NCBI GenBank assembly: GCA_964035545.1
Contig: OZ037769.1
Location: 15,840,633 to 15,904,632, forward strand
DNA from: Bugula neritina
Lineage: Eukaryota > Animalia > Bryozoa
Direction: 5' to 3'
Length of the DNA stretch: 64,000 nucleotides
Under the pieces are notes generated by a model. That model was given only the letters and a program-made list of their open reading frames with translations. It had not been told where the DNA came from and did not search any database. Every line of letters starts with the position of its first letter. Positions within the stretch are counted from its first letter, which is position 1. The translations under genes were made by a program, and so were the position numbers. Positions 21,101-64,000 of the stretch are shown piece by piece.

Positions 21101-24100
21101 ATTATGTATGTCATATATTACTACATCATATCATATATTACTATATTGTATAATATGTTACTATATTATGCCATATATTACTATATTATATCATATATTA
21201 CTATATTATGTCATATATTACTATATTATGTCATATATTACTATATAATGTCATATATTACAGATTGTAGAGACGTTACACACAGAACTTACTCAGACTT
21301 TTCACTCCTCCTTCGTCAGCGTTGCTCCTCTCGTATTCTGGGATCGTCTCCTCCGCCTCGTTCTCTCCCTCCTCCTTTTCATTCTCCTCGTCAAGATCCT
21401 CAAGCTATTCCGATACGTCAAGATGTTCGCTCGCTTCGGCAACGTCTATCGGAGAGCTGCTCGTGATATCCGGGCTTTTGCTGTGCGTTATTATATAGTA
21501 TTATATCTATAGTATTATATCTATAGTATTATATCTATAGTATTATATCTATAGTATTATATCTATAGTATTATATCTCTAGTATTATATCTATAGTATT
21601 ATATCTCTAGTATTATATCTATAGTATTATATCTCTAGTATTATATCTATAGTATTATATCTATAGTATTATATCTACAGTATTATATCTCTAGTATTAT
21701 ATCTATAGTAATATATCTCTAGTATTATATCTATAGTATTATATCTATAGTAATATATCTATAGTATTATATCTACAGTATTATATCTATAGTATTATAT
21801 ATCTATAGTATTATATCTATAGTATTATATCTATAGTATTATATCTCTAGTATTATATCTCTAGTATTATATCTATAGTATTATATCTATAGTATTATAT
21901 CTATAGTATTATATCTATAGTAATATATCTATAGTATTATATCTATAGTATTATATCTCTAGTATTATATCTATAGTATTATATCTATAGTATTATATCT
22001 ATAGTATTATATCTCTAGTATTATATCTATAGTATTATATCTATAGTATTATATCTCTAGTATTATATCTATAGTATTATATCTATAGTATTATATCTAT
22101 AGTATTATATCTCTAGTATTATATCTCTAGTATTATATCTATAGTATTATATCTCTAGTATTATATCTATAGTATTATATCTATAGTATTATATCTATAG
22201 TATTATATCTCTAGTATTATATCTATAGTATTATATCTCTAGTATTATATCTATAGTATTATATCTATAGTATTATATCTATAGTATTATATCTATAGTA
22301 TTATATCTCTAGTATTATATCTATAGTATTATATCCCTATAGTATTATATCTATAGTATTATATCTCTAGTATTATATCTCTAGTAATATATCTCTAGTA
22401 TTATATCTATAGTATTATATCTATAGTATTATATCTCTAGTATTATATCTATAGTATTATATCTCTAGTATTATATCTATAGTATTATATCTATAGTATT
22501 ATATCTCTAGTATTATATCTCTAGTATTATATCTCTAGTAATATATCTCTAGTATTATATCTATAGTATTATATCTCTAGTATTATATCTCTAGTATTAT
22601 ATCTCTAGTATTATATCTCTAGTATTATATCTATAGTATTATATCTATAGTATTATATCTATAGTATTATATCTCTAGTATTATATCTCTAGTATTATAT
22701 CTCTAATAATATATCTATAGTATTATATCTACAGTATTATATCTATAGTATTATATCTATAGTATTATATCTCTAGTATTATATCTCTAATAATATATCT
22801 ATAGTATTATATCTCTAGTATTATATCTCTAGTATTATATCTCTAGTATTATATCTATAGTATTATATCTCTAGTATTATATCTATAGTATTATATCTCT
22901 AGTATTATATCTACAGTATTATATCTACAGTATTATATCTATAGTATTATATCTATAGTATTATATCTCTAGTATTATATCTCTAGTATTATATCTCTAG
23001 TATTATATCTCTAGTATTATATCTATAGTATTATATCTATAGTATTATATCTCTAGTATTATATCTACAGTATTATATCTACAGTATTATATCTCTAGTA
23101 TTATATCTATAGTATTATATCTCTAGTATTATATCTATAGTATTATATCTATAGTATTATATCTATAGTATTATATCTATAGTATTATATCTCTAGTATT
23201 ATATCTATAGTATTATATCTCTAGTATTATATCTATAGTATTATATCTATAGTATTATATCTATAGTATTATATCTCTAGTATTATATCTATAGTATTAT
23301 ATCTATAGTATTATATCTATAGTATTATATCTATAGTATTATATCTATAGTATTATATCTCTAGTATTATATCTATAGTATTATATCTCTAGTATTATAT
23401 CTATAGTATTATATCTATAGTATTATATCTATAGTATTATATCTATAGTATTATATCTATAGTATTATATCTATAGTATTATATCTCTAGTATTATATCT
23501 CTAATAATATATCTATAGTATTATATCTATAGTATTATATCTATAGTATTATATCTCTAGTATTATATCTATAGTATTATATCTCTAGTATTATATCTAC
23601 AGTATTATATCTACAGTATTATATCTCTAGTATTATATCTATAGTATTATATCTCTAGTATTATATCTACAGTATTATATCTATAGTATTATATCTATAG
23701 TATTATATCTCTAGTATTATATCTCTAGTATTATATCTCTAGTATTATATCTCTAGTATTATATCTATAGTATTATATCTATAGTATTATATCTCTAGTA
23801 TTATATCTACAGTATTATATCTACAGTATTATATCTCTAGTATTATATCTCTAGTATTATATCTGTAGTATTATATCTATAGTATTATATCTCTAGTATT
23901 ATATCTATAGTATTATATCTATAGTATTATATCTATAGTATTATATCTATAGTATTATATCTCTAGTATTATATCTATAGTATTATATCTCTAGTATTAT
24001 ATCTATAGTATTATATCTCTAGTATTATATCTCTAGTATTATATCTATAGTATTATATCTATAGTATTATATCTCTAGTATTATATCTCTAGTATTATAT

Positions 24101-27100
24101 CTCTAGTATTATATCTCTAGTATTATATCTATAGTATTATATCTCTAGTATTATATCTATAGTATTATATCTCTAGTATTATATCTATAGTATTATATCT
24201 ATAGTATTATATCTATAGTATTATATCTCTAGTATTATATCTATAGTATTATATCTATAGTATTATATCTATAGTATTATATCTCTAGTATTATATCTAT
24301 AGTATTATATCTCTAGTATTATATCTCTAGTATTATATCTCTAGTATTATATGTATAGTATTATATCTACAGTATTATATCTATAGTATTATATCTATAG
24401 TATTATATCTATAGTATTATATCTATAGTATTATATCTCTAGTATTATATCTCTAGTATTATATCTCTAGTATTATATCTATAGTATTATATCTCTAGTA
24501 TTATATCTATAGTATTATATCTATAGTATTATATCTCTAGTATTATATCTATAGTATTATATCTATAGTATTATATCTATAGTATTATATCTCTAGTATT
24601 ATATCTATAGTATTATATCTCTAGTATTATATCTCTAGTATTATATCTCTAGTATTATATGTATAGTATTATATCTACAGTATTATATCTATAGTATTAT
24701 ATCTATAGTATTATATCTATAGTATTATATCTATAGTATTATATCTCTAGTATTATATCTCTAGTATTATATCTATAGTATTATATCTATAGTATTATAT
24801 CTCTAGTATTATATCTATAGTATTATATCTCTAGTATTATATCTATAGTATTATATCTATAGTATTATATCTACAGTATTATATCTCTAGTATTATATCT
24901 CTAGTATTATATCTATAGTATTATATCTCTAGTATTATATCTCTAGTATTATATCTCTAGTATTATATCTCTAGTATTATATCTCTAGTATTATATCTCT
25001 AGTATTATATCTATAGTATTATATCTCTAGTATTATATCTCTAGTATTGTATCTATAGTATTATATCTATAGTATTATATCTATAGTATTATATCTATAG
25101 TATTATATCTATAGTATTATATCTCTAGTATTATATCTATAGTATTATATCTCTAGTATTATATCTATAGTAATATATCTCTAGTATTATATCTCTAGTA
25201 TTATATCTCTAGTATTATATCTCTAGTATTATATCTCTAGTATTGTATCTATAGTATTATATCTATAGTATTATATCTATAGTATTATATCTATAGTATT
25301 ATATCTCTAGTATTATATCTCTAGTATTATATCTATAGTATTATATCTACAGTATTATATCTCTAGTATTATATCTATAGTATTATATCTCTAGTATTAT
25401 ATCTCTAGTATTATATCTCTAGTAATATATCTCTAGTATTATATCTATAGTATTATATCTATAGTATTATATCTATAGTATTATATCTCTAGTATTATAT
25501 CTATAGTATTATATCTCTAGTATTATATCTCTAGTATTGTATCTCTAGTATTATATCTATAGTATTATATCTATAGTATTATATCTATAGTATTATATCT
25601 CTAGTATTATATCTCTAGTATTATATCTATAGTATTATATCTCTAGTATTATATCTATAGTATTATATCTATAGTATTATATATCTATAGTATTATATCC
25701 CTATAGTATTATATCTACAGTATTATATCTACAGTATTATATCTCTAGTATTATATCTATAGTATTATATCTATAGTATTATATCTATAGTATTATATCT
25801 CTAGTATTATATCTATAGTATTATATCTCTAGTATTATATCTATAGTATTATATCTCTAGTATTATATCTATAGTTTTATATCTATAGTATTATATCTCT
25901 AGTATTATATCTCTAGTATTATATCTCTAGTATTATATCTATAGTATTATATCTATAGTATTATATCTATAGTATTATATCTATAGTATTATATCTCTAG
26001 TATTATATCTATAGTAATATATCTCTAGTATTATATCTATAGTATTATATCTATAGTATTATATCTATAGTATTATATCTCTAGTATTATATCTATAGTA
26101 TTATATCTCTAGTATTATATATCTATAGTAATATATCTATAGTATTATATCTCTAGTATTATATCTATAGTATTATATCTCTAGTATTATATCTATAGTA
26201 TTATATCTATAGTATTATATCTCTAGTATTATATCTCTAGTATTATATCTCTAGTATTATATCTATAGTATTATATCTATAGTATTATATCTCTAGTATT
26301 ATATCTCTAGTATTATATCTATAGTATTATATCTCTAGTATTATATCTATAGTATTATATCTATAGTATTATATCTCTAGTATTATATCTATAGTATTAT
26401 ATCTATAGTATTATATCTCTAGTATTATATCTACAGTATTATATCTCTAGTATTATATCTATAGTATTATATCTATAGTATTATATCTCTAGTATTATAT
26501 CTATAGTATTATATCTCTAGTATTATATCTATAGTATTATATCTCTAGTATTATATCTCTAGTATTATATCTCTAGTATTATATCTATAGTATTATATCT
26601 ATAGTATTATATCTACAGTATTATATCTATAGTATTATATCTCTAGTATTATATCTATAGTATTATATCTATAGTAATATATCTCTAGTATTATATCTAT
26701 AGTATTATATCTATAGTATTATATCTATAGTATTATATCTCTAGTATTATATCTATAGTATTATATCTCTAGTATTATATCTATAGTATTATATCTATAG
26801 TATTATATCTCTAGTATTATATCTATAGTATTATATCTCTAGTATTATATCTATAGTATTATATCTATAGTATTATATCTATAGTATTATATCTCTAGTA
26901 TTATATCTATAGTAATATATCTCTAGTATTATATCTCTAGTATTATATCTATAGTATTATATCTATAGTATTATATCTACAGTATTATATCTCTAGTATT
27001 ATATCTCTAGTATTATATCTATAGTAATATATCTCTAGTATTATATCTCTAGTATTATATCTATAGTATTATATCTCTAGTATTATATCTATAGTATTAT

Positions 27101-30100
27101 ATCTATAGTATTATATCTATAGTATTATATCTCTAGTATTATATCTCTAGTATTATATCTCTAGTATTATATCTATAGTAATATATCTATAGTATTATAT
27201 CTCTAGTATTATATCTATAGTATTATATCTATAGTATTATATCTCTAGTATTATATCTATAGTATTATATCTATAGTATTATATCTATAGTATTATATCT
27301 ATAGTATTATATCTCTAGTATTATATCTATAGTATTATATCTCTAGTATTATATCTATAGTATTATATCTATAGTATTATATCTATAGTATTATATCTCT
27401 AGTATTATATCTATAGTATTATATCTATAGTATTATATCTCTAGTATTATATCTATAGTATTATATCTATAGTATTATATCTATAGTATTATATCTCTAG
27501 TATTATATCTCTAGTATTATATCTATAGTATTATATCTCTAGTATTATATCTATAGTAATATATCTATAGTATTATATCTATAGTATTATATCTATAGTA
27601 TTATATCTCTAGTATTATATCTATAGTATTATATCTCTAGTATTATATATCTATAGTATTATATCTCTAGTATTATATCTCTAGTATTATATCTATAGTA
27701 TTATATCTATAGTATTATATCTATAGTATTATATCTCTAGTATTATATCTATAGTATTATATCTCTAGTATTATATCTCTAGTATTATATCTCTAGTATT
27801 ATATCTATAGTATTATATCTCTAGTATTATATCTATAGTATTATATCTCTAGTATTATATCTACAGTATTATATCTCTAGTATTATATCTCTAGTATTAT
27901 ATCTATAGTAATATATCTATAGTATTATATCTATAGTATTATATCTATAGTATTATATCTCTAGTATTATATCTCTAGTATTATATCTCTAGTAATATAT
28001 CTATAGTATTATATCTCTAGTATTATATCTCTAGTATTATATCTATAGTATTATATCTATAGTATTATATCTACAGTATTATATCTCTAGTATTATATCT
28101 ATAGTAATATATCTATAGTATTATATCTATAGTATTATATCTATAGTATTATATCTATAGTATTATATCTATAGTATTATATCTCTAGTATTATATCTCT
28201 AGTATTGTATCTATAGTATTATATCTATAGTAATATATCTATAGTATTATATCTATAGTATTATATCTATAGTATTATATATCTATAGTATTATATCTAT
28301 AGTATTATATCTATAGTAATATATCTATAGTATTATATCTCTAGTATTATATCTCTAGTATTATATCTCTAGTATTATATCTCTAGTATCTCTCTCTGCA
28401 GGTATTTTTCTTCCTCCTTACTCTCATGTACACCAACGTCGGAGTTGCCCTCTTCCAGTCCGTCTCCCTCCCGTTCAGCGACTACTGGCGAGGCATGATG
28501 ACGGTGACGGCAGCTCTCACCGGCTCCGCTAGCTTTGCCGACTTCAAGGATACGATGCCGTATCTGGGCGGAGTTTATCTGGTTGCCGTGACGTGCACAG
28601 CTGGAGGCGTTCTGTATGCGCTGGTAAGTGTCGTACTTTGTAATACGAGGGCTGAGATGGTCTGTGTGTAGCGTACTGTACAGTGTCGGGTGTCTCTACT
28701 CGTAGATGGCCTCTATTCTCTCCTTCCACCTGCGAGACTTCAGACAGGATCCTATACTGGCCATGGACATCAAGGAGGCGCTCTGCTTCCTCTTCCACAA
28801 GTCAATCTGCGGCTCTAAGGCTAATAAGGAGAAAGAAGAAGACGATTCCAGCAGTCAAGATCTCTCGCCGGTATGTAGTGTTGTGTGGCGGGGAGTTTGT
28901 CACTGTAGGGTAACAGCAACAGAAAATGTGCATCACATGACCAGGAATAGTCTCAGATATAAACCTTAGAGCGGGGCTGTCCAACAGGCGGCCTCAGGGC
29001 TAGATGGGGCCCTCAGTCTACATTTATGTGGCCCTTGAAAGCATAACAAATCAAATTATTTGCATACATATACGGATTACAGTGGACAAAGCACCTTTTT
29101 AATGCCTTATTTATATGCATACAATAAAACATGCAGCCTGCAGTAGTTATTAGGACTTTATTGTGTAATGATTCATAAGAATTCGGAATAAAGTTATTTG
29201 AAAAACACTGATGCTGTGGCCCCAACCCAAGCTGAAGTTTACAGTATTCCCTTTCAGTGGCCCTCGGTCTAATTGAAAGGTTAAGGATACAAATAGCCAG
29301 CAGTTTTCTTGTTACATACTGCATACAACTAAGTAATCAGCTCAGAGTAGTAGTGCGACCTTTAGCTGACCTCTGCTACGTGGTGTCTGTTTGGTAGGAG
29401 TTTGCCCTGGCTGAGATGGAGTACCAGGTGGAGGAGCTGCTCTTCAAGATGTCCGCCCTGTGCGACGGAGCCTCCCCCCGCCACAAGCCGGGACTCTACT
29501 ACACTCCTGCCGAGTCGGACAACACCGGGGGAGTGGTGTCGGAGGAGGGGGACAGTGGTGGAGTGAGCATGGCGCTGGCAGGGGTTACCGACAAGATTGA
29601 AGATGTCAACTCCCTGAGTAGACTGCTTCACCTCCAGGGGATCGGCAGCGGCATTAGTGACGCACACACCTACAACAGGTAGACTGGCAGCGTGACCTTA
29701 GTGACCTTAGTTGGTATAATTATACTAGTATATCATTGCACCACTCTTACCCTGTTGCGTTGTGTGTAGGTCGCAGCTAGAAATGGACGTACTCCGGCAG
29801 CTACAATTATCACACGGCAGGGATATGGGTATCGGCGTGTGGGACAATCTAAGAAGTGTTCGGGTGGAGAGACCTCTCTCTGGTGACCTCAACTGTAGTG
29901 GTACGTGCTGTGTGTAGTATGTACAGTGTACTGTGTAGTATATACAGTGTACTGTGTAGTGTGTACAGTGTACTGTGTAGTATATACAGTGTACTGTGTA
30001 GTATATACAGTGTACTGTGTAGTATGTACAGTGTAGTGTGTAGTGTGTACAGTATACTGTGTGTAGTATGTACAGTGTAGTGTGTAGTATATACAGTGTA

Positions 30101-49000: not shown

Positions 49001-50603
49001 ATAAGAATAAACAAAAAAGTTTTCTTAAATATAATAGCAATTCACATATATTATTTCATAAGTGTAAAAAAATAGAAAAAATTAGTTGAATCACAAAAAT
49101 TATGAACATTATATAACTGGTACTGATTGAAGTTGTCAGAGAAATTACTAAGAGAGCACATGTTTAAACCTGTCATACTTTGCTGCATGTGAAATATTTA
49201 ATTTATAGGAATTGGCAACATCGTAGCCTGCCTTACTTTAGCTCTCACCGGCTCACTCACACTAAACAGATTTATCCTATTTGGAAGTTCTATCTTGCTG
49301 ATGAGTGTTGGGATCTTTATTGCACCATTTGCTACCACTAAGGTGAGGGGCAGTCTTTTGAAATGTAGTCATATGAAACTTTTTATTTTCCCCACTTCAT
49401 TAAAATATATTATAGTGTTGAGTTTACCCAGTAGTCCCCGTGGTGTAATGGTTAGGGCATCTGCTTGCAAGCCGGAGGTCTCAGATTCAAATCCTAGGGT
49501 GGGCAATTATTTTATAATATAAATAAGTGCATTTACACCTATTCATATAAAAACTTTGTTTTAGCCTATAAGCTAGGGCCACACGGTGCGTATTTTCGCA
49601 TGCGAAAATTGAAATCACAAGTAGCAAAGGTGTCCACTGTAGCATCAGTAATGCGTGATAAATAAAGCTTTCATTTTTAAATCGCACTCGCCTTCAATAA
49701 AATGCAATTTACTGGAATGTAGCACAAAAATAAAGAAATTGGGCTCGCTGAATAACTATCAGCCAATTAGGTGACGACAACAGAGACGATTCGCACTTGC
49801 GTTGAGAATGCTGAGCGACAAGTGAGAATGTTTTCTCAACGCGTACAGTGGACACCTTTGCTACTTGTGATTTCAATTTTCGCATGCGAAAATACGCACC
49901 GTGTGGCCCTAGGCTTAGCAGTAAAATGACAATGAACAATATTTTGGTGTTTTTATGAACTTGTGAGTGGAATATCCAGAAAAGAATTGAGTTACAAGCC
50001 TGAGTCTGCCTTGAAGTGCGATAATAACAATATACAGAAATGTAATATGATAATTTCTCTTACACCAACGAGTCATAGCTAGTATAGAAGTTGTCTCTCC
50101 ATGTATTTATGGGCAGGGCAAGAAATGGTGAATAGCTATTTTGCATTTTGCTTTAACTATTTTAGATTATATAAATTTTATAACTGTGGAAATATTATTG
50201 CTGCAGGCAATCTACTACACTTCAACTTCACTCTACGGCTTAGGAATAGGTTTCGCTGTGACCAGTGTATTAGCAGTTATCAGTGACTTATGTTCAACTC
50301 AACAACTTCCACTGCTCTTTGGCATAGAGTCTTTTTCAAAAGGTTTGGGAGTTCTCGCTCTACTCCCTCTAGCAGGTAAGCCATGAGTTATAGATCTTAG
50401 CCTATTGATGATTTTACATGTTTTGCCATACTTTATAGTTGCATGTTATCTTTAATCAGCATTGTTACGGTGATTGTATTACAGCTTACATAGCTGAGAG
50501 CACAAAGGAGAAACACGGGCTCATATTTGTGGGTAGTTGTGGAGTTGTAGGAGCTCTGGCTATGCTGGCTATAGCTGTACTAACTGCAAGAAAGAGAAGA
50601 TAA
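46064..50603 (+). CDS. Monocarboxylate transporter (SLC16/MCT family, MFS), ~466 aa, 9 coding exons
   Basis: Exons 46064-46283, 46627-46770, 47159-47413, 47580-47683, 47852-47974, 48627-48759, 49209-49342, 50207-50375, 50485-50603. MCT motifs DKGYAWVILFFSF, GPIASVLVKTFGCR, ILPLYFERFKYIAFAVAALG, and WPLISQYLLSKFGY. Acceptors of the two central-loop exons are less certain. Confidence 0.9.
46845..47001 (-). mobile_element. tRNA-derived SINE, same family, in MCT intron 2
   Basis: GGATGCCCTCCCTGAGATCACCAATGG..GGGCTCGAACCCATGAC..TAGACCATGGCTGTTC is the reverse complement of the 39267 element head. Confidence 0.75.
48115..48438. mobile_element. Degenerate MITE with ~55-bp imperfect TIRs in MCT intron
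   Basis: TAGATACACTTTTCCGTACCGTAG..AAAATATGTCAGCCATT versus AATGGCTGATATTTT..CTACGGTATGGCAAAGTGTGTCTA. Confidence 0.65.
49434..49505 (+). pseudogene. Decayed tRNA-like sequence (tRNA pseudogene or SINE head)
   Basis: CCCGTGGTGTAATGGTTAG..CTTGCAAG..GATTCAAATCC shows cloverleaf remnants, but the acceptor and anticodon stems are mismatched. Similar decayed heads occur at ~53055-53125 and ~53280-53360. Confidence 0.55.
49576..49909. mobile_element. MITE with ~65-bp perfect TIRs, TA-flanked, in MCT intron
   Basis: GGGCCACACGGTGCGTATTTTCGCATGCGAAAATTGAAATCACAAGTAGCAAAGGTGTCCACTGTA and its exact reverse complement at the other end. Confidence 0.9.
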
Positions 50604-51517
50604 CTCTTAAAAGAACTTACATATTTTATGCACTGTACCCATAATGCACTACATGTCATTGTGTTGTAGTATATTCCAATAGTGTGAGATGCTCTAACTT
50701 TTATTTTTTATATTGTCAAATGTAAATTTCTTGTTTTGTCATCAACAAAATTAATCAACTGTACAGTTTTGCTGTGGCAGCGTTATATCTCAATATGAAG
50801 AGTATATAAGAAGCAGTTGGCTGATTAAATAGGTCATAAATTGCTAAGACTATACCAGAATTTTGACACATAATATGTACTGCAGAAAAGATATTAGACT
50901 TATTTATCTAGCAGTATATATATGTGTGTGTGTGTGTGTCTCTAACCAATAGACTTGTTAACCTGTAAACTGAAAGTCCCTTAGCATTATCTATTGACTG
51001 CAAAATGGCTATAAAGGAATTTAAAACACCATTCGCATGGCATCTCATTAAAATCTTTTAGCAATGTTTTGTGTTTATTGCTTTCTAGCTGTGCATACTA
51101 TTATATACCTACTGCTATTATAAAACAGGTTTAATCTTTTAGATTACTGATTTGCGTAAGGAATGGAATGCTTAGTTATAAAAGGTTTACCTAAAAAGTT
51201 ATATGCATACTTTTTGAGATGTATATTTTAAAACTCCGCAATACTATATATTATTATTGGTGTTTTCATTTAATAGTTCAAGGTAATTTTTATTCATGAT
51301 ATCAAAAGAATAATATATTTGCAGCTAAAATGAATAGAAAAGCTGTATCAAATATGTGCAATTCTTCCAAAGTATTGAAATAAGAAAGAATATAAATATT
51401 ATACTAGGTGCATCTGTATTATTGAGTGGATAACTCCAAAATATAATAGTGTAAAATATAATAGAGCAGTCATCTCCACTTGACACTTAATCCTCATACT
51501 ACGATATCATTTAGAAT

Positions 51518-54500
51518 TTAGATGTTGCAGTAACTGGGTATGTTGAAGATACTCGGATCTGTGATTCCTTTAGTCATGTTTCCATATTGTAGTGTCACCA
51601 GCTGTGGAACTACAAGATATAAATACATAGGAATGGAGTACTAAATGCAGATGTAGACAAACAGGAGTGATTGCAATATTTACATAAAAACCACTTGACA
51701 ATTTAGACTAATGATATTTATATAAAGATAAAACAGTGTAAACTATTGTAAATAAGGAAAGTCAAGCTATTTACACTTTCACGCATGCAGCAGCTAGAAA
51801 CTAGTGGAACCAATATATTACAGATGCTTACATTTATTTTAACTGACTGGAGAATTCATTCCCTTCTAAGGACCTTTAAGAATTAGATAAATATTCAAAG
51901 TATACAATAGAAATTCTACTCACCACCTCCTATCACATGCTCTACATTTTCAGAAATCATAACGAAGTTGTCTCTCATGACGGTGACGGTAGTCTTACTG
52001 GATCCGTTGTTGTACTGGTAGGTGTCACTCCACTGGGTACCTCCAACCAACCAGGAGGTTCTGTAAGTCAACCAGTCTGAAGGGTATAAAGGTTATGTAC
52101 AAGAGATATATACTGTATTTGAATATGTGCTACTCAAACAAACCCTTTGAATATGTAGAAGCTCTGAGCTTGTAATAGGTTACCAGTGCAGCAGCTTTAA
52201 GCAAATGATTGACAAATTTGCAAGCTGAGGGGAATTGTCTACATGTAACACGAGTTAATATATATTGATTTAATAATTATCATGTATAAGTACAGAGAAT
52301 AGAGCCCACCCCAACCCCCACAATCAAAACCTGGGAGAAACCTAACTTGAACCTAATTGACTTACACAGAGAGAAATATTAGTGTTAGAGTGAACATTAG
52401 CTGACAACTAAAACCTCTCGTTTTTTGGATCCCTAAATTGACCAGCAGTAAATAGAAATTAGTGTCAGGTACTGTTCACAGTGAATAGTATGTTAGATCA
52501 ATGTTGATATAAAGAGTTGTGAAGTTGATTCTTTGTATTTATCACAATGAGCCAAGTTATGTTCAATGGTGATCTTATATATGTTCAATGGTGAGCTTAA
52601 ATATTTTCAATGGTGATCTTATTTATGCTTAATAGTGATATTATATATGTTTAATGATGATCTTATTTCTGTTCAATGATGATCTTAGATATGCTCAATG
52701 CTGAACTAAGTTATATTCAAAGCTGAACTTATAAATGTTCCATGCTGCTCTAATTTTTGTTGGAAATAAGCTTCTGCAAAAATTATTACTGATCACTCTG
52801 AACTAACTTGTCATAACTTCTAACCAGTATGAGAGTATAGTAATGTGGATTTTATTGTATATGATAGTTGAATATAAGAAATGCAACAAAAAATAACTTC
52901 TAAAGATTAAAATAAGAAAAAAAACATGAAAATAAGCATTTGCAGAATTTTTCTACGACTGTAAATTCAGTTAACTTTTCTCAATATTAGCAGAACCTGC
53001 TAAGACCATAGTGTGTGTCATTACATTCTTGCTCTGTAGTGTAGCGATAACCAAGCAGTTGTAATGGTTAGCACACCTGTGTGCAAGTCCGAAGTCTGTG
53101 ATAGGAACCCAAGTACGGGAAGGGGGGAGGGGGAAGTTTTATAACTAATTCCAGCGGTTAGTAAAGTGTGGTAGAACTCCGAGAGGAGTTGAGTGGTCAG
53201 GGAAGCTTGAAGGAGTAGTATAAAAAAGGCAGCTGAGTTCTTGAAAAAAGGGTAAGGTGTAGTGTCGAGAGCACCCAGTGACGCTTGTAATGTAGTGGTG
53301 AGTGCGCCTGCTTGCAGGCTGAAGGTCTCTGCATGATTCAAAGTTTTGTAGCGGTCAAATTCTTTTTTGTGCTCTTATTCAGCATCTTTGAGTGCATGTT
53401 CTTAAAAAATGTTATGGGATCTACAACAAAAGATAAAAGTTGGGTAATATTTAAACTGTATTAGTATGAACAGTAAACATTTGGTTAAGATATACAATCA
53501 CAAGCAGCTTATAAATTAAGTTCAACTTTGAAGAAGCTGAAGTCTAAGGCCAAAACTAATAGTATCAATGATGTTAGCTATGAATCTTTCAGCATATTTT
53601 CAGCACCACCGTACCAATCGTTTGATTCTGAATAACCATACAGGCTTTGGCAAACTTATGATCATTATGTTGCGTAGTGTTTGGGTTAGTTTGAGCTTAT
53701 CAAAATTTAGTAAAAAAAGAATAAACTGGTAGCACGGAAGTTAATAAGAATTTTTGCCAACTCACCACTAATATTGGCATTTTGGTACTTAGCTATAAAA
53801 CAAGAAGCTAGCTTGGCAGCTGCTTAAGGCTAATAACTACTTGTAGGCTGCTAAACTGCATTATTAACAATACTTCTACAATGGGGGGGGGGAATTCAAA
53901 TTAATGAATTTAGCACAAATTGCTAGAAGGTGAAGTGGAAATAAAACGCTAAATTTTTTGAAAATATATTGTTACAGGAAAACTTGTATCAAATTGATAC
54001 AGGAATAGAGTAGTTTGGGAAATATCAGTTAATGTGGTCTCTTAAAAGTTATAGTGGCACAAATTCAATTATCTGTCTACAGCAATAGTCGTACTGTCAT
54101 TGTGATTGTGATATAAAATCAAAATGATAACGTTAAGCAAATGATTGAGCTTACCTTTTGCTGCAATGACAACTTCAGTTCCTAACTCTGAAAGAAAGTG
54201 ATCATCTTCTATCTCTGAGAGGTAGCTGCAATCTTTACCCATGTGATGAAATGATTCAATGTTTTCCATGTTGTGAGGTTGTTTGAAAGCACAAATTCAC
54301 TGAATCTCAAAGCACAACCTCTTAGTCTGAGCCTCTGGTGTTCACTATGCTGGCAGAATATTTCTTCTGTCAATAGCCATGAATGAAAACTATGTGCTGT
54401 TATGTAATAACCTTTGTTTTGCTCTGTCACTGTTTGGTAAGCCAGTTTCTTGCCTTTGAATTACAATTTAAATATTTCCTTACTATAGCTCTGTTATGCA

Positions 54501-56642
54501 ACATCTTCTTTTGTTCCACCGGGTAGTTTACACAAGTTTACACAAGGCTTTTGAAGTGGTTCACCTGATCCACAATTGACTATTCAGTAGCTTGTTTCAT
54601 TGTTAATTTTAAGCTTCTTGTTTGAAACACATTTGCTGATAACTGAGTACATTGGAGTTTAATGGTGCATCTCCCTGATTTCTCTTTTACACACATTTCA
54701 AATTAGTTGGCTTTCCTTTCCATGAATGAAATTGACTAGTGAAGCCTAAACTACCCATGCAAGAGATATGTGCAGTTGAAATTTTTTGTTGATAAATTCA
54801 ACTTAAGTCTTTGATAAACGGAGTGGGGCAATGTTTAATAGTAGTCTGGTAACAAGCTATTTGAAAATGTCTTGGGTTCAAAAAAATTTTGAAATCATAA
54901 ACAGCTGGTAGGTTGAAGGAGTTTCATTCCACTTATATGCTCCCCAGTTAGGTTGTATTTTTTGTTTTGGTACTAAGTATTATATACCTATATACCCTTA
55001 TATAACTTTCATATCAATTGCTAAACATAAAATAACCATTATTATGATATATTTGCAATAGTATTTAAATTTTTCCAAATTTGTGTTGAAAAAAGCATTA
55101 AATGCATTAATAATAACATTTTTTCAAAAAACAAAAAATATAGAAAATGCAAAATTAATAGGTTTATGCAGAGCAAAGAAATTTATTTGTATGCCAATTA
55201 TAAAAAGCAATTGACTCAAATTTATTTAAATGCACATATATTTCAATAGTATTCAAATAAATTGCACGTAAATGTATAAATAGCATCTAACTGGGAAGCA
55301 CCAATCGAAATGACCCAAATGTAGGGTTCAACTCTATCCTAGCTTCCTATAAAGGTTTGTGATCATCATTAGTGCACATGTGAACGAATAATGTTGTTAG
55401 GTGAACAACTGCCGGTTGTTCCATAATTCTTATGTAAATAAAATTTTGCTTGAACATATGTAGTTGTAGCATTGATCTCACTTTCAGCTCCTATCAATTA
55501 CTGTTTAGCTTCATTAAGACCTAGGGATGATAATTACGTAATACTTGTGAAAAGTAGCATCGACTTAACAACTAAGTGGTTTCAGAGCTACTACAAAATA
55601 TTTTTCAGCTTACACTAATCGGATTAATTTTCAATTTCATCAAAATAAGTGCAGGTCTAACAACCATTAGAGGTGTGGTGCAGGCTATACCGACAATAAA
55701 AGGCTCTTTGAACAACTTTAGTGCAAGCACTGCACTAATATTTCTCTCTGTGTATAGTCACTTACTGCTGTCTGAACAAGGCTGATTCACTGTGACTGGT
55801 GGTAACTTCTGACATTTCCTGTTCACTACATCTGCCAAGTATGATGCAGACTACAACAGGAAGCAAAATGGTTCTGCATAGTTTTGCTGTAGCTGTTATA
55901 TTAACACACTGTACTAAACTACTGAAAAGCAGGGGAAGCAATCCTGTTTCTTATGGCATGGAGGGCGAAAGATTTTCTCCGAGCAGCTTAAGTTGATAAA
56001 AGCTCCTCATTAGTGATAACAGCAAGTATTATTTCTTATTGATATTGTATAAGTATATAATGCTCTGGATAAGCATTGACTAAGTCTATAGACTTATTGG
56101 TGTATAATATATTATACACCAATATTGATAGCAGTTCCCTATCTGTGAAAAATAGCAAGTGGCTTTCAAATCCAAGTGCCAAACAATTGTAAGCATAAGG
56201 GAAGCTACAATCTCAACTGTAAGCGTAAGCAAAGTCAAAATGCCAATAATAATTCACCTCATAAAAAGTGAAGTTGGCTCATTTTGTTAAAAAATAGTTA
56301 GAAAATAGCCATATTTCAAGAAAATGGCAGAGTTTTGTCTAGTTTTACAAGACTGTACCTGCGTAGTTATCTCACCTTTGTGTTCAGATAGAGATAGCTG
56401 CCAACATACTGCCCTTGGGAGAAGACACTCTCTGACAGACCAATCACTCCTCTTCCATAGTCAGCCGCTGCTTTTCCAACCACATCGATAATGTAGAACT
56501 TTCCTTGTGATTGCTCTGCCACCTTTCCAACCACCACAGCCTCCCACTGCTCTGGTGTACACACTCTCTCACCTTGGTGGGCTGGAGAAGTGTTTACAGC
56601 AACCACCAAGGTGATCACCAATACGCTCAGGTATCTTGACAT
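51518..56642 (-). CDS. Ependymin-related protein (EPDR family), 198 aa, 4 exons
   Basis: Exons 56642-56376, 55850-55766, 52076-51924 and 51609-51518. Signal peptide, CTPEQWEA, KCQKLP..QPC, and C-terminal YGNMTKGITDPSIFNIPSYC, typical of ependymins. All introns are GT-AG with consistent phase. Confidence 0.92.
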
Positions 56643-56755
56643 AGTGACTGTGTATTGCTCTACTGCTTGCTAAACTATATATGCTCAGTTTTAACAGGTA
56701 AATGCATTCAATAGTTATATTCAATTCATTGTGAATGCAATCGGAGATGTTTTGA

Positions 56756-57350
56756 TCACGTGATTTGATTGATCACGAGGCTGTATTAGCAACAAAAGCG
56801 ACTTTGTATAGAGACGTCACGTGTCTACAGCTTATTTGATTTCTATGACTCATTAAATATGTTGAGCACGTGCTGAACTATAATTAGGCTTAGAAGAAAT
56901 AAACACCAAATTTTTACAATTTATGCAAATAACTTATACAAGTAGAATTAATAAACAATGGTTTGTTTATAAAATGCAGCTGCTTCAGATATATCTGCGT
57001 GTATTTATACATGTTGCGTCAACAGTCAATTATTATGGAGAAATAAAGTAATGAAAGTTAAGGACGTGCACACACTATATGTTACATAAAAAGCAAGGTT
57101 ATGTTGTTTACAGTTTTCTCTTGCGTTATTATATCACAGTTTGAACAGGTGAGCAGCATTGTAAGATACTCTGATAAGAAATATAGCCTTAGGTTTAGCT
57201 AAACAGTCCCCCATCTGGTTGTCACAAGACGTTAGTTTGCTATAACTTCAAGCACCTGCATTAGCAGTTCATTTACAACATTTTGTTCTTTCTCTACATT
57301 AAGAAAGTGACTCAATATATAAGTTTCTTTTGTTTCAATTGTCACGTGAC
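56756..57350. promoter_or_regulatory. E-box/CLEAR-like motif cluster upstream of the ependymin-related gene
   Basis: TCACGTGA 56756-56763, TCACGAG 56773-56779, GTCACGTG 56816-56823, CACGTG 56867-56872, and the perfect GTCACGTGAC at 57341-57350. A TATA-like ATATATAG lies on the minus strand near 56675-56682. Confidence 0.6.
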
Positions 57351-58524
57351 ACAATCTCATGACAATTTATTTCTTCTCATCTGAAGTTTAGTTGCATGGT
57401 ACCCACTGTTGGAATGATGAGTTAGAATCAATGAAATATCTTATTATTACATAATTTTATTGCGAATAAACTAGATTCATTCCTTGGCCTGCCAACAGTA
57501 TAACAGGTTTGAAACTGTTTTTTATCTCTGATGGAACTGAAGAGTAAATATTTAAACTCCATCTTGGATTCTAAAAGGTATTGTATATATAGGCTATTCT
57601 TATCATCTGTCACTGTTTGTACATAAAGTTAATTAAGGTTATTAATATGCAGAGTGTTATCATTATATACACATCATGGGAGGCCTACAATGTACACATC
57701 CCTGCTATATACTGTTTATAGATAACTATAAAAACATTACAAATAATGGGACGCAGTTATGAAACTTTTCAAACTTTGAACTTCACCATGTTAAGTTATG
57801 CATAGCCTACGAATATATAACTTGTTTAAATAGAATAATCTTATCAAGGTACGTCTGCGGAGTTAACACTCCTTATATGGAGTGTTTTTCCTCCATAAAC
57901 ACGACACATGATGTGAGACGATGCCTCAAGCCACTCCTATAGTGTGCGAAGTTAGTGAGTGGAATAAGTTTATTAAATTAGGAAGTTAAAAAGAAGAAGC
58001 ACTTTGTATGTGATACTAACGCTGCTTCATCTTGGATCATTCAACACACATTATATTATGCAGAAATAATTTCTATAAGTAATAAGGTAAGACATACCAT
58101 CGTTGTATCTTATTATATTTATTTGGTTGAATATTTACTACCATATTTCTATACACAAAACTATACACACTATCCCTAAAGACTCTATAATAAGTAACAT
58201 ATATAATGTAGTATATATGGTGTATTTTATGTTATGGTATAATGCATGTCTGTCATCCATTTTGAAAAAGACATCGCTGCCAAACATTGTAAGATTAAAA
58301 ACCTTTTGTCTTTATTGATGACGTCACAGAATTATTGTGAAATTACCAATGTTATTGTTATTTTATGTAGTGTAGAGATATGATGTCAGTTTGAAAGTAT
58401 TTCCTGGAGAAGGTGTACAGAGGAAGTACAAGATACAGACAACTGAGTTAACAAACTTTGAAGGTAAAAACTGCGTGCTTATTTTGTTATTACATTTTTA
58501 TCTGGTTGCAGTACAACATTATGC

Positions 58525-58984
<460 letters not shown>

Positions 58985-59921
58985 TTATATATATTGATAT
59001 ATATATTTTTATTGTTATTTATTATTATATAAACACTCATTTATTATTCCAATACTCAGGTACAACATAACATGGTGAATCATGGAGGAGTACATTGCTG
59101 AATTAGAGTTGCTTTTAATAAAACAATTGAGAAAAGCAGAAAAAACAAGAAACTGGGTTGACTTTGTCAAGGTACTACAATATATATTTTATGGTAGAAT
59201 ATATTAAAATACTATTTGAATTTGAGTAATATACCTAGTTGTTGAATTATAGCTAAAATAATATAACATATACAAATTACAGTAACGAATAAAATAATAT
59301 ATTACTCATTTGTAGACATAAACAATTAGTAAATTATTATAAAAAGTGATGATGCAGGACTTGCAGCAAATTAATTAGAACTCTGATCTACTTATAATAC
59401 TACAATAAAATAACTTTAATTATTTCTATAGAAAAGTTTATTTTGAGACAGTTGCTGCTAATTAAGCTTGAAACTAGATAACAGCTCTCTTAAAATGAAA
59501 GCCTCATTCAAAGACTGCAAATTTTCTCCTGCTGTGAAGATTTGGAAGAATTAAATCATATAAATTCACAAAGCTGGGTATTTACAAATATATATAGTAT
59601 AAGTTGGTCCCGAATCTTTCTTTACAAACTGAATATATTAATAATACAATTATTTAAGAAACTATAGGAATACAAATTTTTATTTTCTATTTTATAACTA
59701 TTATCTATAATAGGTATATACTGAACTTACTCGTTTCAAATAATTTTCAATTTTATTCTATTTACTGCCTTTGAGAGTTATCTGATTAATATCTAGTCAC
59801 TGGAGCCTCACAAAAACTTAGCTGCTGGAAAACAGCTGCACCTAGCTATATGGTTATACATAAAGCACCGTTGACAATTACAAAAATCATATAGTAGCTG
59901 TGCGTGTCGAAGACAGTGCTA

Positions 59922-60355
59922 GGGCCACACAACGCGATTTACACACGCGTGACATGCGAGAAAACCTGTTTAGCTCAAAAATGGGACGTTGTTTGCGAGT
60001 TTTCATGCAACTAACATGCTAAGCGAGAAGTAGGGAAGCTTGTGCGTGTTTGATCTAATTGGCTTATTATCATTTAGCGAGCACACTTTTTTATTTTAAT
60101 TTATGTTCTAGCTTTTATCGAACTAAATTAAAATAGTTTCATATAGTTTGCATTTCCACTTTTATAATATCTAAAGTCACTTTGTCGATGATGTAGTTTT
60201 AAAAACAAAAGTCTGTAGGCGAGCAGTAAAGTTTAACGCTAACATTATTATTGCTAATAAATTTCTGCAAACGAAGCACACTCATTGTGTGTAGCATATG
60301 TCTATAAACGGGTTTTATCGTACCTCACATGTGAGTAAATCGCGTCGTGTGGCCC
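59922..60355. mobile_element. MITE related to 49576-49909 (older copy, opposite orientation)
   Basis: Termini TA-GGGCCACAC..GTGTGGCCC-TA with imperfect ~50-bp TIRs. Internal CTAATTGGCT..AGCGAGC matches the reverse complement of the 49.7-kb element interior. Confidence 0.75.
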
Positions 60356-61658
60356 TAACTGCACTGTACTAAAAATAAACTATAAAGTCAGTTGCAAGTA
60401 TCTCGGAGATTATACGGCTAAATTGCAACTACACAGAGTGAAGACCAGTTTTAGGGTCTCGGCAACACGTTTACAGAAAAAGATGGTGACTGTGAGAGTA
60501 GTTGCATGGAGGTTGAAACTTGTAGTCTGGGACTGCAGGGTGTTTCCTGAGCAGGGATAATCATTTTGATCATAACAACTTTCTATAATAATTATAGCAT
60601 CCACTACAAATCAAAATTTTACAGTTTAAATATTATAATAAACAATTCATGCATATGTTAAACAAATCTACCCTGTATATATTAAGCAGTTAACATAACC
60701 CATGACAAGTAACTAAATGCAGAAAACAGCATATATAGTAGTGAGTATAGCATATGCTAAGAATAAAAAAAGTTAATAAATTTTAAACAATATTCAGATA
60801 ATGTTAACAACTCAATAAATCAGATGATAGTTATTGGAATGTAGCGTTCTAGACTTTAACTATCTGTCTCCAAAACCGTAGTTGGCTTCTCACTTGCAAT
60901 CATCTTGGAAACCCTGTCTTGGAGTGCGAGGAATATTGGGTAGTTGGAGGTTACCAGTTGTAGTCTCAGACTGCTAATTGGTGTTACCTCGTGATAACAA
61001 CTTTACCAACCAGTCTCCCATAGTTTGAACCTCTTCATCCCAAAATATAAATAATTGAACAAAGTTAGCATGTAAACAATATTGAGCATGCGTAATTACC
61101 AAAAAACAGATGAAGATAATGCATATATATTATACTGGAAATAGCTATAGGAACATAGAATTAGCAGTTGCCTTTTACATGAACTTAATACTACTAATAA
61201 TCCAAGAACCAACTTCATGTTAATGTACAGTTACTCTAAAAATGCTATAGTGTAAAAATTGATCCTGTCAGGGTTGTGTATACGTTTTAGTATCTCCAGA
61301 TTGAAAAAGAAAACAAGTAAACGTCAAGATATAAAATTGAGTGTTAAAAGTTGATATAGTATTAACAATATTTTATTTAATTGACTTGCATTTTTTCAGT
61401 ATACTGCCGGTATTGATTCACCTTTCATTGTAAATGTTAAACAAATTTCAGTGTAGAGGAGTCAAAAAAATACTTTTTCCTTGAAGAGCAATTTTTGTTC
61501 TTGTAAACATAAGCAGTTGTCTTTCCTTTGTTATGTAGAGTCATGGAATAGCAAACCATCTGCAAAGCATAGATTCACAAAACAGTCAGAGATGGTACCA
61601 AAAAGTCTATGAAATAGAAAAAAATGGTACAAAGGAAAACATCCACTCACTTTTACAG

Positions 61659-64000
61659 AGCATCAAGAATTGACAAGACAACACAAACAACAACTTAAAG
61701 AATACCGAGAGAATACAATCATTAACTTTGACAGTTTGAATAGTGATGTAGAGTTGTTGGACATAGACAATGTGTTTAGTGATGCTAATTTAGAAATATC
61801 TAATCGGTTGTCTAATGATGTGTTTGCAAGTAGTGAGGAGTGTTCCAAAGCATTTGCAGAGTTTTCTTGTTCTATATTTAAATCAAGTAGAGAGTTGCTT
61901 AAAGGGTATCAAGTGGAGCCACCCTGTGATTTTGCTGTAGTTGCTTTGGGCTCAGTAGCTCGTGGTGAGGCAACCCCATATTCTGACCTTGAATACGCAT
62001 TTCTCATTGAAAATGAGAATGAGAAAGATTATTTCACTCAGCTGGCTGTTGACACATATTTTAGAATAACTAACCTCAACGAGTCCCCATTGAAAACCTT
62101 CAACATTAAAGTTGAAAACTCTCCTGACTGTCTCAGTGAGATCTGTCCAGTAGGATATAGAATAGATGGTCTGACACCAAATGCTGGTAACATACCAACA
62201 GGAAATGGATTGGGTAGATCTCTCACCTTCACAGTTGAAGAAGCAGTGAAATTGTACAAAGAGGAAGTGATGTCACCATCTGGAGAACTAGCTAGTCTTT
62301 CGGATCTGCTCATGACATCGCAGCTGATATACTGTTCTGATGATGGAGCACAGTTACATGACAGATTTATGAAAGAAATAGCTACATATGAGAAAGTCAC
62401 AGCTCAGAATGATCCTAAAATCAAACAGAAGAGATTGGAGAGACTTTCTCTAGATTTAGAAAAATATGATTTCCTCCCAGAGTTTGAATTTACAACTTTT
62501 GTTGGTGAAGATGTGAAGGTAAAAGAAGACATTTTCCGTTACATCACTCTGTTGGCTACTAATCTGAACATTGCTCTTTGTTTTCAACTAAACTTTCCAT
62601 GGAAGGTTTATGAGGCACTTTATCAGTCCGAGATGATTTCTAAAGGAAACTTGAGATACCTTCACATTATCCTTGGACTCTCAATATACATGAGAACTAT
62701 GGCATATATCATGATGGGAACTCAAAAAGCTGAAATCTTACTGAGTACTCCAACTGCTGAAATGAAAAGTGGAAATGAAAGACACAAACATTACTATGTA
62801 CCTAGAAAAATATTTGTGACATATGGATCAATACTGATTCCAATAAAGCAATCCCTCATATCAAGTATGAACAAAGGAAATAGGCTACTGTCAGCATTCA
62901 AGGAAAAGAGTGTGAGTGAATACCTAAAATTAGTGATTCCCAGTGACTTGGTGACAGATAAACATGATTATATGACAATTTGTGAGGTACTGTGTTATGT
63001 TAAAGACAGAAACACAGCCTTAAAGTACATATCTGCTGATTCAGGTGTTGATATCAGAAGTGTAGGGTATGAGGAGTTTGTGAAATGTATAAGATCAAAA
63101 TACAGTACAAACAAGTCAGACTTTCTAGAGAAAAAGTATTTGGAAATGTGCTGTCATTTGCTGACTAACAGTACCCATTATAGTAGTGCTATCGACTACC
63201 TAAGTTGGTTAATCAGTTATGAAACAAATTGGTTTAGTATACTGCAACGTAAGAGGCTGATAGCTGACTGTATGAACAAACTGAGTAGATATAAATCTGC
63301 TAGAAATATTCTCAATCAGATAAAGTCTACACTAGAAGAAGAGCTCATGATAGACAAGAACACATCTCTCACTGAGTACATACTAAGAAAGGTAGACACT
63401 TCTACTAAATTGCCACAGTATATGCTACATTTCTTTCAATTCACATCTGATCTCTTCCACTCACTGGGTGACACTAATATTCACTTATCAAATCTAGCTG
63501 AAGCTAAGTCTTACCTGATGCAGTCTCTTTCTATTAGCAGAGCATTGTGTGAAAAGAATGTTTTAGATTATAGTGCAAGAAAAAACAAGATAATGGAATC
63601 AATTATTAGGAGCAGCTTAGGAACTGTGTATTCACAGGAGGGTGCATATAGCACAGCATTAGAATATTACACAAAGTCAATAGAGATGATGAAAGCTGTT
63701 TATGGTGAACATACAAACCACTCTAATATAGCTAGCAGCTATGGCAATATTGGTGATGTACACAGACAACTAGGTAACTATGACACAGCACTAGAATATT
63801 GCACCAAGTCAATAGAGATGAAAAAAGCTGTTTATGGTGAACATACAAACCACTCTAGTATAGCTATCAGCTATGGCAATATTGGTGATGTACACAGACA
63901 ACTAGGTAACTATGACACAGCACTAGAATATTGCACCAAGTCAATAGAGATGAAAAAAGCTGTTTATGGTGAACATACAAACCACTCTAGTATAGCTATA
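61659..64000 (+). CDS. DUF294-like (GlnD/GlnE-type, Pol-beta superfamily) nucleotidyltransferase fused to TPR repeats; large exon, 3'-truncated by window
   Basis: Frame is stop-free from 61613 to the window end (~795 codons) and is missing from the ORF track because it has no stop. It contains PPCDFAVVALGSVARGEATPYSDLEYAFLIE (GS at 61949, SDLE at 61982), GYRIDG, a helical VKEDIFRY..MRTMAY..GTQKAEI segment, and then TPRs (AVYGEHTNHSNIASSYGNIGDVHRQLGNYDTALEYCTKSIEMKK). Candidate acceptor is CACTTTTACAG|61659. Upstream exons are unresolved. Confidence 0.85.
63650..64000 (+). repeat. Coding tandem repeat, 132-nt unit (44-aa TPR), about 2.7 copies visible
   Basis: GCTGTTTATGGTGAACATACAAACCACTCTA recurs at 132-nt spacing with near-identical DNA between units. 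Confidence 0.92.

Follow-up and report, generated by a model that had tools for sequence, protein, structure and literature searches.

What does the long open frame at the downstream end of this stretch of the Bugula neritina genome encode, does it belong to the animal, and can this particular copy make its product? The window is the whole stretch of 64,000 nt that was analysed (C5:15840633-15904632, C5 being its contig); coordinates are positions in the window, residues are numbered from 61661, and the parts of the gene lie on the forward strand. A first-pass annotation, made from the letters alone, had read an intact animal gene from 61659 to the window end, with a bacterial-type nucleotidyltransferase followed by tetratricopeptide repeats (TPRs). 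We find a bryozoan gene family in which a nucleotidyltransferase of the GlnE/DrrA/DUF294 class precedes a TPR array. Judged from fold and motif, the likeliest function would be TPR-guided protein AMPylation or another NMPylation, that is, transfer of a nucleoside monophosphate (NMP). The explanation as a whole, of which a two-exon gene at this locus is part, carries a joint probability of roughly 0.6. The copy in the window is frameshifted as assembled.

The enzyme domain and the repeats that follow it

The frame that opens at 61661 runs for 780 stop-free codons to the window end. In the genome it comprises 1137 codons, the stop ending at window-equivalent 65074 (L001:4575), 1074 bases beyond the window; the uninterrupted exon of more than 2.3 kb described in the first-pass annotation is therefore real. 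An N-terminal helical region (61625-61915), modelled as long helices with a predicted local distance difference test score (pLDDT) above 90, leads into a Pol-beta-type nucleotidyltransferase core (61916-62290). The core carries GSVARGEATPYSDLE at 61949-61993, in which G97-S98-x9-S108-D109-L-E111 can be recognized, and a third acidic residue, D169, in GYRIDG (D169 at 62165-62167). A helical second domain at 62291-62920, the counterpart of DUF294_C and HEPN-like substrate-binding domains, holds the invariant K288, R293 and R345. The 64 homologous enzyme domains of alignment A1, from which the family profile was made, share the residues G, S, D, E, D, K, R and R without exception. A G-x11-D-x-D motif has been given for SidM and GlnE, and G97-x11-D109-x-E111 fits it (PMC12409994). 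The Pfam model DUF294 (PF03445) reaches 30.3 bits, above its curated threshold of 21 (E 4.3e-7, residues 57-129); it matches 61 of the 64 homologues and, in a six-frame search, 16 genomic copies above the cut-off.

From 62921 to 63580 the enzyme is joined to the canonical TPRs by a linker solenoid of helical hairpins, all-helical in the model. The array of TPR_12 repeats, which are of the kinesin-light-chain type, starts at 63581, continues to 64000 and past the window end, and has its last codon at 65071. TPR_12 is matched at E 7e-37 in the window frame and at E 1.8e-77, in seven stretches, in the full frame; at the DNA level a tandem 132-base unit is present in 6.4 copies (90% match) at L001:3153-4002. 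The model of the full-length protein (pLDDT 88, predicted TM-score (pTM) 0.82) shows a continuous solenoid of helical hairpins over residues ~437-1136. Pfam finds no NACHT, NB-ARC or other signalling domain or NTPase in the 1137-residue frame. The interval between enzyme and TPRs, where STAND/NLR-type proteins have a central P-loop NTPase, is modelled as helical hairpins.

An AlphaFold model of residues 40-420 (pLDDT 88, pTM 0.88) was compared with known structures by two methods. Foldseek returned Legionella pneumophila DrrA first (1.7e-9), followed by the two halves of E. coli GlnE (1.8e-6 and 5e-6), with E-values running to 8e-6. VIA-align, which is independent of Foldseek, gave Z-scores of 22.8 for DrrA (288 residues), 19.9 for the N-terminal and 18.7 for the C-terminal half of GlnE, over 274-288 residues and spanning both domains; the alignment to DrrA also takes in the N-terminal helical region. 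The next fold, that of aminoglycoside nucleotidyltransferases, reached a Z of only 7.8, and the helical second domain alone matched HEPN proteins at a Z of ~6. A PDB search with the single sequence found DrrA only at E 0.11, whereas the family profile found it at E 1.7e-6, with the family's GS...SDLE aligned to the GS...SDLD of DrrA. The NCBIfam equivalog models for GlnD scored 13-18 bits against cut-offs of 519-1299, in the motif region only, and no HD or ACT domain was detected by Pfam; on these grounds the protein is of the GlnE/DrrA/DUF294 class and not an orthologue of GlnD or GlnE. The automatic name that UniRef gives to its relatives is 'Protein-PII uridylyltransferase N-terminal domain-containing protein'.

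These results agree with what the first-pass annotation had claimed for the region: the catalytic signature with its third acid in GYRIDG, membership of a DUF294/GlnE-type class distinct from cGAS, OAS and TENT, and the order of helical segment, linker and TPRs. The checks proposed with it, a Pfam scan for DUF294 and TPR_12 and a search for the nucleotidyltransferase fold with AlphaFold and Foldseek, gave the expected matches.

The same comparisons bear on two other activities. In the first, the messenger option of the first-pass annotation, the enzyme would make a nucleotide second messenger or a polymer when a ligand binds the TPRs, in the manner of cGAS, OAS and the CD-NTases. A Pol-beta-type triad joined to a variable repeat domain is in keeping with such a role, and the expansion of the family together with a TPR dN/dS (the ratio of nonsynonymous to synonymous substitution rates) near 1, described below, resembles what is seen in receptor families. 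However, the domain specifically adopts the fold of the protein modifiers DrrA and GlnE, while a CD-NTase gives a Z of only 3.7, Foldseek probabilities are ≤0.13 for cGAS-like, OAS-like and TENT structures (0.10 for MB21D2), and the Pfam scan of the frame has no Mab21 or OAS match. We consider messenger synthesis improbable.

In the second, the domain would remove AMP or UMP, as the N-terminal domain of GlnE does, or would have a small molecule or an RNA end as the acceptor of an NMP. That deadenylylating domain matches the model as well as the C-terminal domain, and a weaker relationship is seen with aminoglycoside nucleotidyltransferases and MntA-type enzymes. Both sequence profile and structure, however, rank the AMPylation domain of DrrA first, and TPR arrays are typically protein-binding modules. 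This alternative is unlikely as well, if a little less so than synthesis of a messenger, and protein NMPylation is the activity that we retain.

A bryozoan gene family with relatives in other animals and in bacteria

The six-frame search of the B. neritina genome returned 65 matches, of which ~20 are close copies arranged in tandem clusters (C5 and C7), ~23 are at 39-44% identity and ~18 at 29-35%. For counts of residues and stops 61 copies were retrieved, and 57 of these are stop-free in the enzyme part. G97, S98, S108, D109, E111, E141, G165, D169 and P179 are kept in all 57 stop-free copies; K288, R293 and R345 are kept in 56, the remaining copy having an alignment gap there. Conservation of the catalytic residues among paralogues and a count of those paralogues had been put forward with the first-pass annotation as ways to examine it. 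Comparison of eight close copies gives dN/dS values of 0.30 for the N-terminal helices, 0.12 for the core, 0.24 for the helical domain, 0.47 for the linker and 0.99 for the TPRs, the last value possibly inflated by misalignment of repeats and by gene conversion. The catalytic core is under purifying selection, and the TPRs undergo relaxed or diversifying change.

Could the stretch be symbiont or bacterial DNA in the assembly? Outside the animals, the closest relatives come from intracellular bacteria, which is what one might expect of a contaminant. Yet the locus lies within a chromosome-scale contig of 17.7 Mb and has a GC content of 0.34-0.36, like its surroundings. It has a spliceosomal GT-AG intron, a conserved two-exon structure and a separate ATG exon that recurs 17 times; ~60 paralogues lie on 9 contigs; orthologous families are present in the RefSeq models of another bryozoan; and the bryozoan sequences form their own clan in a tree (100% support), apart from all bacteria. 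The chance of contamination is in our view negligible, and the claim of the first-pass annotation that this is an animal gene holds. The main coding exon is intronless in all ~60 copies, which fits acquisition from bacteria without proving it.

A profile search of 1.84 billion cluster representatives gave 2458 hits at E≤0.001, of which 986 were at ≤1e-30. Named animal relatives include many Watersipora proteins, many Branchiostoma proteins and an Owenia fusiformis protein, and the order of enzyme followed by TPRs is common to these three and to many endosymbiont proteins. Some of the Branchiostoma proteins have three enzyme domains, which in one of 2060 aa are identical and in tandem, and the Owenia protein, of 1909 aa, combines an OTU protease domain with two enzyme domains and TPRs. 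Candidatus Jidaibacter acanthamoebae, an amoeba symbiont, encodes two giant proteins with an F-box, TPR_12 and two enzyme domains. The mention in the first-pass annotation of similar architectures in amoeba endosymbionts and marine invertebrates was therefore accurate. Metagenomic relatives are found in eukaryote-like contigs, two of the longer ones holding exon fragments of separase and ECM29; one relative, of 3107 residues, adjoins nusA-infB-rbfA-truB in a bacterial contig.

Bacterial genomes, one per species, were scanned with a bacterial alignment as the query. An earlier scan of bacteria with the animal-based alignment had given no match, its single pattern being too specific. The second scan gave 78 loci, most of them in named or lineage-assigned intracellular symbionts. 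The carriers are Holosporaceae, Tisiphia, Rickettsia endosymbionts, Megaera and Midichloriaceae; Amoebophilaceae and Cytophagales; and Parachlamydia, other Chlamydiales and Rhabdochlamydiaceae. A few are metagenome-assembled genomes (MAGs) labelled to phylum or class (Bacteroidota, Alphaproteobacteria, Gammaproteobacteria) or as uncultured bacterium. In the bacterial proteins sampled the enzyme is again followed by TPR_12, with ankyrin or PARP domains in front. One Chlamydiales protein has a PARP catalytic domain, ankyrin repeats, the enzyme and TPR_12. Some genomes hold many loci, ~20 in the Chlamydiales MAG CAWHVD010000001 and ~8 in the Cytophagales MAG OY970075.

An unrooted tree of 100 domains contains a bacterial clan (97% support) and a bryozoan one (100%), with amphioxus and Owenia falling between them. 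Identity to classical DUF294 proteins, GlnE or DrrA is 8-15%, too low for a reliable root. Branching within the bacterial clan does not follow taxonomy. A single transfer between animals and bacteria would suffice to account for this tree. Of the horizontal origin suggested in the first-pass annotation, the link to bacteria by gene transfer is plausible, while an unrooted tree does not set its direction.

Gene structure and frameshift of the window copy, and transcription of the family

We believe that the locus is a two-exon bryozoan gene, whose short ATG exon occupies 59082-59171 and whose giant exon extends from 61539 to ~65074. The coding part of the ATG exon (MEEYIAELEL...WVDFVK) spans 30 codons and abuts a GT donor at 59172; the annotated B. 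neritina protein EB796_007152 begins with a sequence 83% identical to it. Altogether 17 copies of the exon are present in the genome, mostly at a distance of 1.4-2.7 kb upstream of a big exon. The intron, GT...AG, extends from 59172 to 61538. Its acceptor, gttatgtAG at 61530-38, is followed by the true 5' end of the big exon, 61539-61617, which encodes SHGIANHLQS...VYEIE in the frame of the ATG exon. In seven close paralogues the open frame begins exactly at the equivalent of 61539, right after the acceptor, and the start of a paralogue's big exon aligns to the Watersipora protein P0017 from residue 30. Directly upstream of 61659 the enzyme frame of the window copy encodes WYKGKHPLTFTE; further up, SHGIANHLQS...VYEIE is in another frame. 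In Watersipora subatra RefSeq models this same two-frame sequence is present as one continuous N-terminus.

Sequencing runs provide a view of transcription. Three runs from three studies (X1, X3 and X6) are guessed to be RNA, X1 alone having a library on record (RNA-Seq), and run X8 is DNA-like. The RNA-like runs cover 58990-59157 and 61510-64000; their depth drops to zero in the bin after 58990-59157 and is zero over 60334-61509, within the intron, whereas X8 has depth in all 30 bins. The family is transcribed, and the window copy is not necessarily the source: transcription is seen at the level of the family because the RNA contigs are short and 95-99% alike. One contig from an RNA run reads through 61625-61683 with no mismatch, which argues against splicing at 61658.

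The exon start at 61659 given in the first-pass annotation is therefore wrong, since the frames of the paralogues open at 61539, the Watersipora N-termini align, and that contig reads through the region. The dinucleotide ag at 61657-58 is exonic sequence.

The first-pass annotation had also taken the copy as intact. As assembled it is not. At 61618-61624 the window copy has a run of seven A (A7) where 18 of 18 genomic paralogue matches, as well as an alignment of 8 paralogues, read AAAACAAA. This is a deletion of 1 base, 80 bases into the big exon, and because of it the ATG exon and 61539-61617 do not share the frame of the enzyme. Upstream of residue 213, and hence ahead of the catalytic motif, the enzyme frame offers no ATG, and the copy as assembled cannot make the enzyme from its own ATG. 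In addition, there is a copy-specific in-frame insertion of TGG near 61593-95, ~25 bases upstream of the A7 run.

There is about an even chance that the window copy is a dead gene, the locus yielding only a peptide of ~77 residues and the long frame being a remnant that has not yet decayed. The deletion, the TGG insertion and the want of an early ATG all speak for this, and elsewhere in the clusters three copies carry stops and one is frameshifted. On the other hand, the frame has 1137 codons with no stop, and in its 420-residue enzyme part no amino-acid change is unique to this copy in comparison with 15 close copies; any inactivation must then be very recent. Furthermore, a contig from DNA run X8 has one extra A at the run, giving an A8 form that is in frame and absent from every copy in the assembly, which points to an allele or to a homopolymer error in the consensus. 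The window copy may accordingly, in no order of preference, be a pseudogene that arose very recently or a null allele, or the consensus may be in error here. An intact neighbour copy, for example the one whose big exon starts near C5:16003905, is the better subject for further work.

The number of ATG exons (17) is smaller than that of big exons (~20), and none lies upstream of the copy at C5:15924032. The big exons at C5:15924032 and C5:16105852 have intact frames, with no ATG exon in the interval that separates each from the previous copy; they may be usable as alternative terminal exons of the upstream gene. At the 5' side, a contig of run X3 matches from 59058 on and is preceded by 219 unrelated letters, beside a possible acceptor ctcAG (59058-59060). 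This loose end suggests a further exon of 5' untranslated sequence; the 30 letters of it that were reported are absent from the window at ≤3 mismatches.

The surroundings of the gene are repetitive. Inside the intron, at ~59998-60333, is a high-copy repeat with a depth of 14,000-18,000 in DNA run X8 and high depth in the RNA-like runs too. Two other copies of the gene have it upstream, kept at ~81% (three loci, of which two overlap), and it is probably a transposable element or a short interspersed element. The ~11 kb upstream of the big exon form a segmental duplication (50209-61700), 88-93% identical to the sequence upstream of the copies at C5:15957550 and C5:16021370, and the repeat unit of the cluster therefore exceeds the gene. 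A simple repeat lies at 58879-58980, shortly before the ATG exon. More distant are a 6.9-kb satellite at 21494-28389, with ~492 copies of the 14-base unit TATAGTATTATATC (94% match, GC content 0.18), and a second array with a 20-base unit at 21065-21261.

Proposed activity and comparison with known systems

DrrA modifies Rab1 and GlnE modifies glutamine synthetase. A family member is best read as a cytosolic protein in which a short helical N-terminus precedes a two-domain nucleotidyltransferase of the adenylyltransferase type, itself followed by a long solenoid of TPR_12 repeats. By analogy with DrrA and GlnE, the Pol-beta core would bind NTP-Mg through D109, E111 and D169, with K288, R293 and R345 contributed by the helical domain. 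An NMP, either AMP as with DrrA and GlnE or UMP as with GlnD, would then be attached to a hydroxyl-bearing side chain of a protein target, and the fast-evolving TPR solenoid would select or sense the partner protein or regulate the enzyme. That the substrate is a protein, which nucleotide is used, and any biological role are matters that we infer. A possible role in immunity or conflict, of the kind raised in the first-pass annotation, is hinted at only by the expansion of the family, its tandem clusters, the fast evolution of the TPRs and the effector-like partners of the bacterial counterparts.

Several points weigh against this explanation. The activity is deduced from fold and motif, and a fold match cannot tell AMPylation from phosphorolytic removal of AMP, given the Z of 19.9 for the N-terminal domain of GlnE. 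The Pfam model of the second domain, DUF294_C (PF10335), is below its cut-off on the window copy and matches 1 of the 64 homologues at E≤0.01; two relatives do pass its 22.5-bit cut-off, one from amphioxus (34.7 bits) and one from Chlamydiales (27.7 bits). SidM_N (PF20879) scores 18.9-19.5 bits on the window copy against a cut-off of 27. This model matches 44 of the 64 homologues at E≤0.01 and an amphioxus relative at 40.7 bits, so that by sequence profile the family is related to SidM_N while the window copy is no member by the Pfam rule. As to expression, the RNA contigs may stem from paralogues, the type of the runs is guessed, and among the contigs listed none crosses the joint from 59171 to 61539. 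For the window copy itself, the frameshift must be added.

The fold and the chemistry are already known; the new part is an expanded, animal-encoded family of the DrrA/GlnE type fused to TPRs. In a 2025 review FICD and SelO are the only AMPylases credited to animals, and enzymes of the adenylyltransferase type (GlnE, DrrA) are assigned to bacteria (PMC12409994). A literature search, which was not exhaustive, found no paper on an animal DrrA/GlnE-type-TPR family, and the databases give automatic names only. If active, the family would be a new class of writer in animal signalling. With an intact active site under strong purifying selection, it would also offer a tractable case of a module shared by hosts and intracellular bacteria. 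In a wider and much more tentative proposal, which taken as a whole we think rather doubtful, bryozoans, amphioxus and some annelids would hold a third class of AMPylase (or NMP transferase), of the DrrA/GlnE type and encoded by dozens of genes. Its diversifying TPRs would sense or target partners in immunity, allorecognition or the control of symbionts, and its ancestry would be shared, by gene transfer, with effectors of Rickettsiales, Chlamydiae and Amoebophilaceae.

Among characterized proteins the best match is DrrA/SidM (PDB 6yx5, 3nku). It shares with the family the two-domain build and the G-x11-D-x-[DE] motif, GS...(S)DL(D/E) being aligned, and like the bacterial relatives of the family it comes from an intracellular bacterium. 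Identity is only 11-15%, however, and DrrA continues into domains for guanine nucleotide exchange on Rab and for binding of phosphatidylinositol 4-phosphate, while the bryozoan proteins continue into TPRs. Moreover, DrrA is a secreted effector, whereas the bryozoan family is encoded by the animal's own genes. Both halves of E. coli GlnE (PDB 1v4a, 3k7d) match the fold and have the same class of motif, but the protein encoded here lacks the second enzyme half of GlnE as well as HD and ACT domains. Bacterial proteins with DUF294 and DUF294_C are close in structure, their ESM Atlas models superposing at a TM-score of 0.69, and they are also nearest in a language-model search. They often carry CBS or cyclic nucleotide sensor domains where the family carries TPRs, and DUF294_C is undetected by sequence in 63 of the 64 TPR-linked family members.

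FICD (HYPE) is encoded by a single-copy gene and anchored in the membrane of the endoplasmic reticulum. In outline it is alike, being an animal protein with TPRs attached to a domain that transfers AMP, but its catalytic fold is Fic, not Pol-beta, and its TPR part is short (PMC12409994). The nucleotidyltransferase-TPR_12 proteins of endosymbionts (Jidaibacter WP_161791869, KIE04896 and others) have in common with the family the enzyme domain (profile E-values to 1e-91), its invariant residues and the position of TPR_12 behind the enzyme. They differ in being much longer, often with two enzyme domains, in having N-terminal F-box, ankyrin or PARP domains, and in forming a clan of their own (97%). 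These N-terminal domains suggest that the bacterial proteins are effectors acting in host cells.

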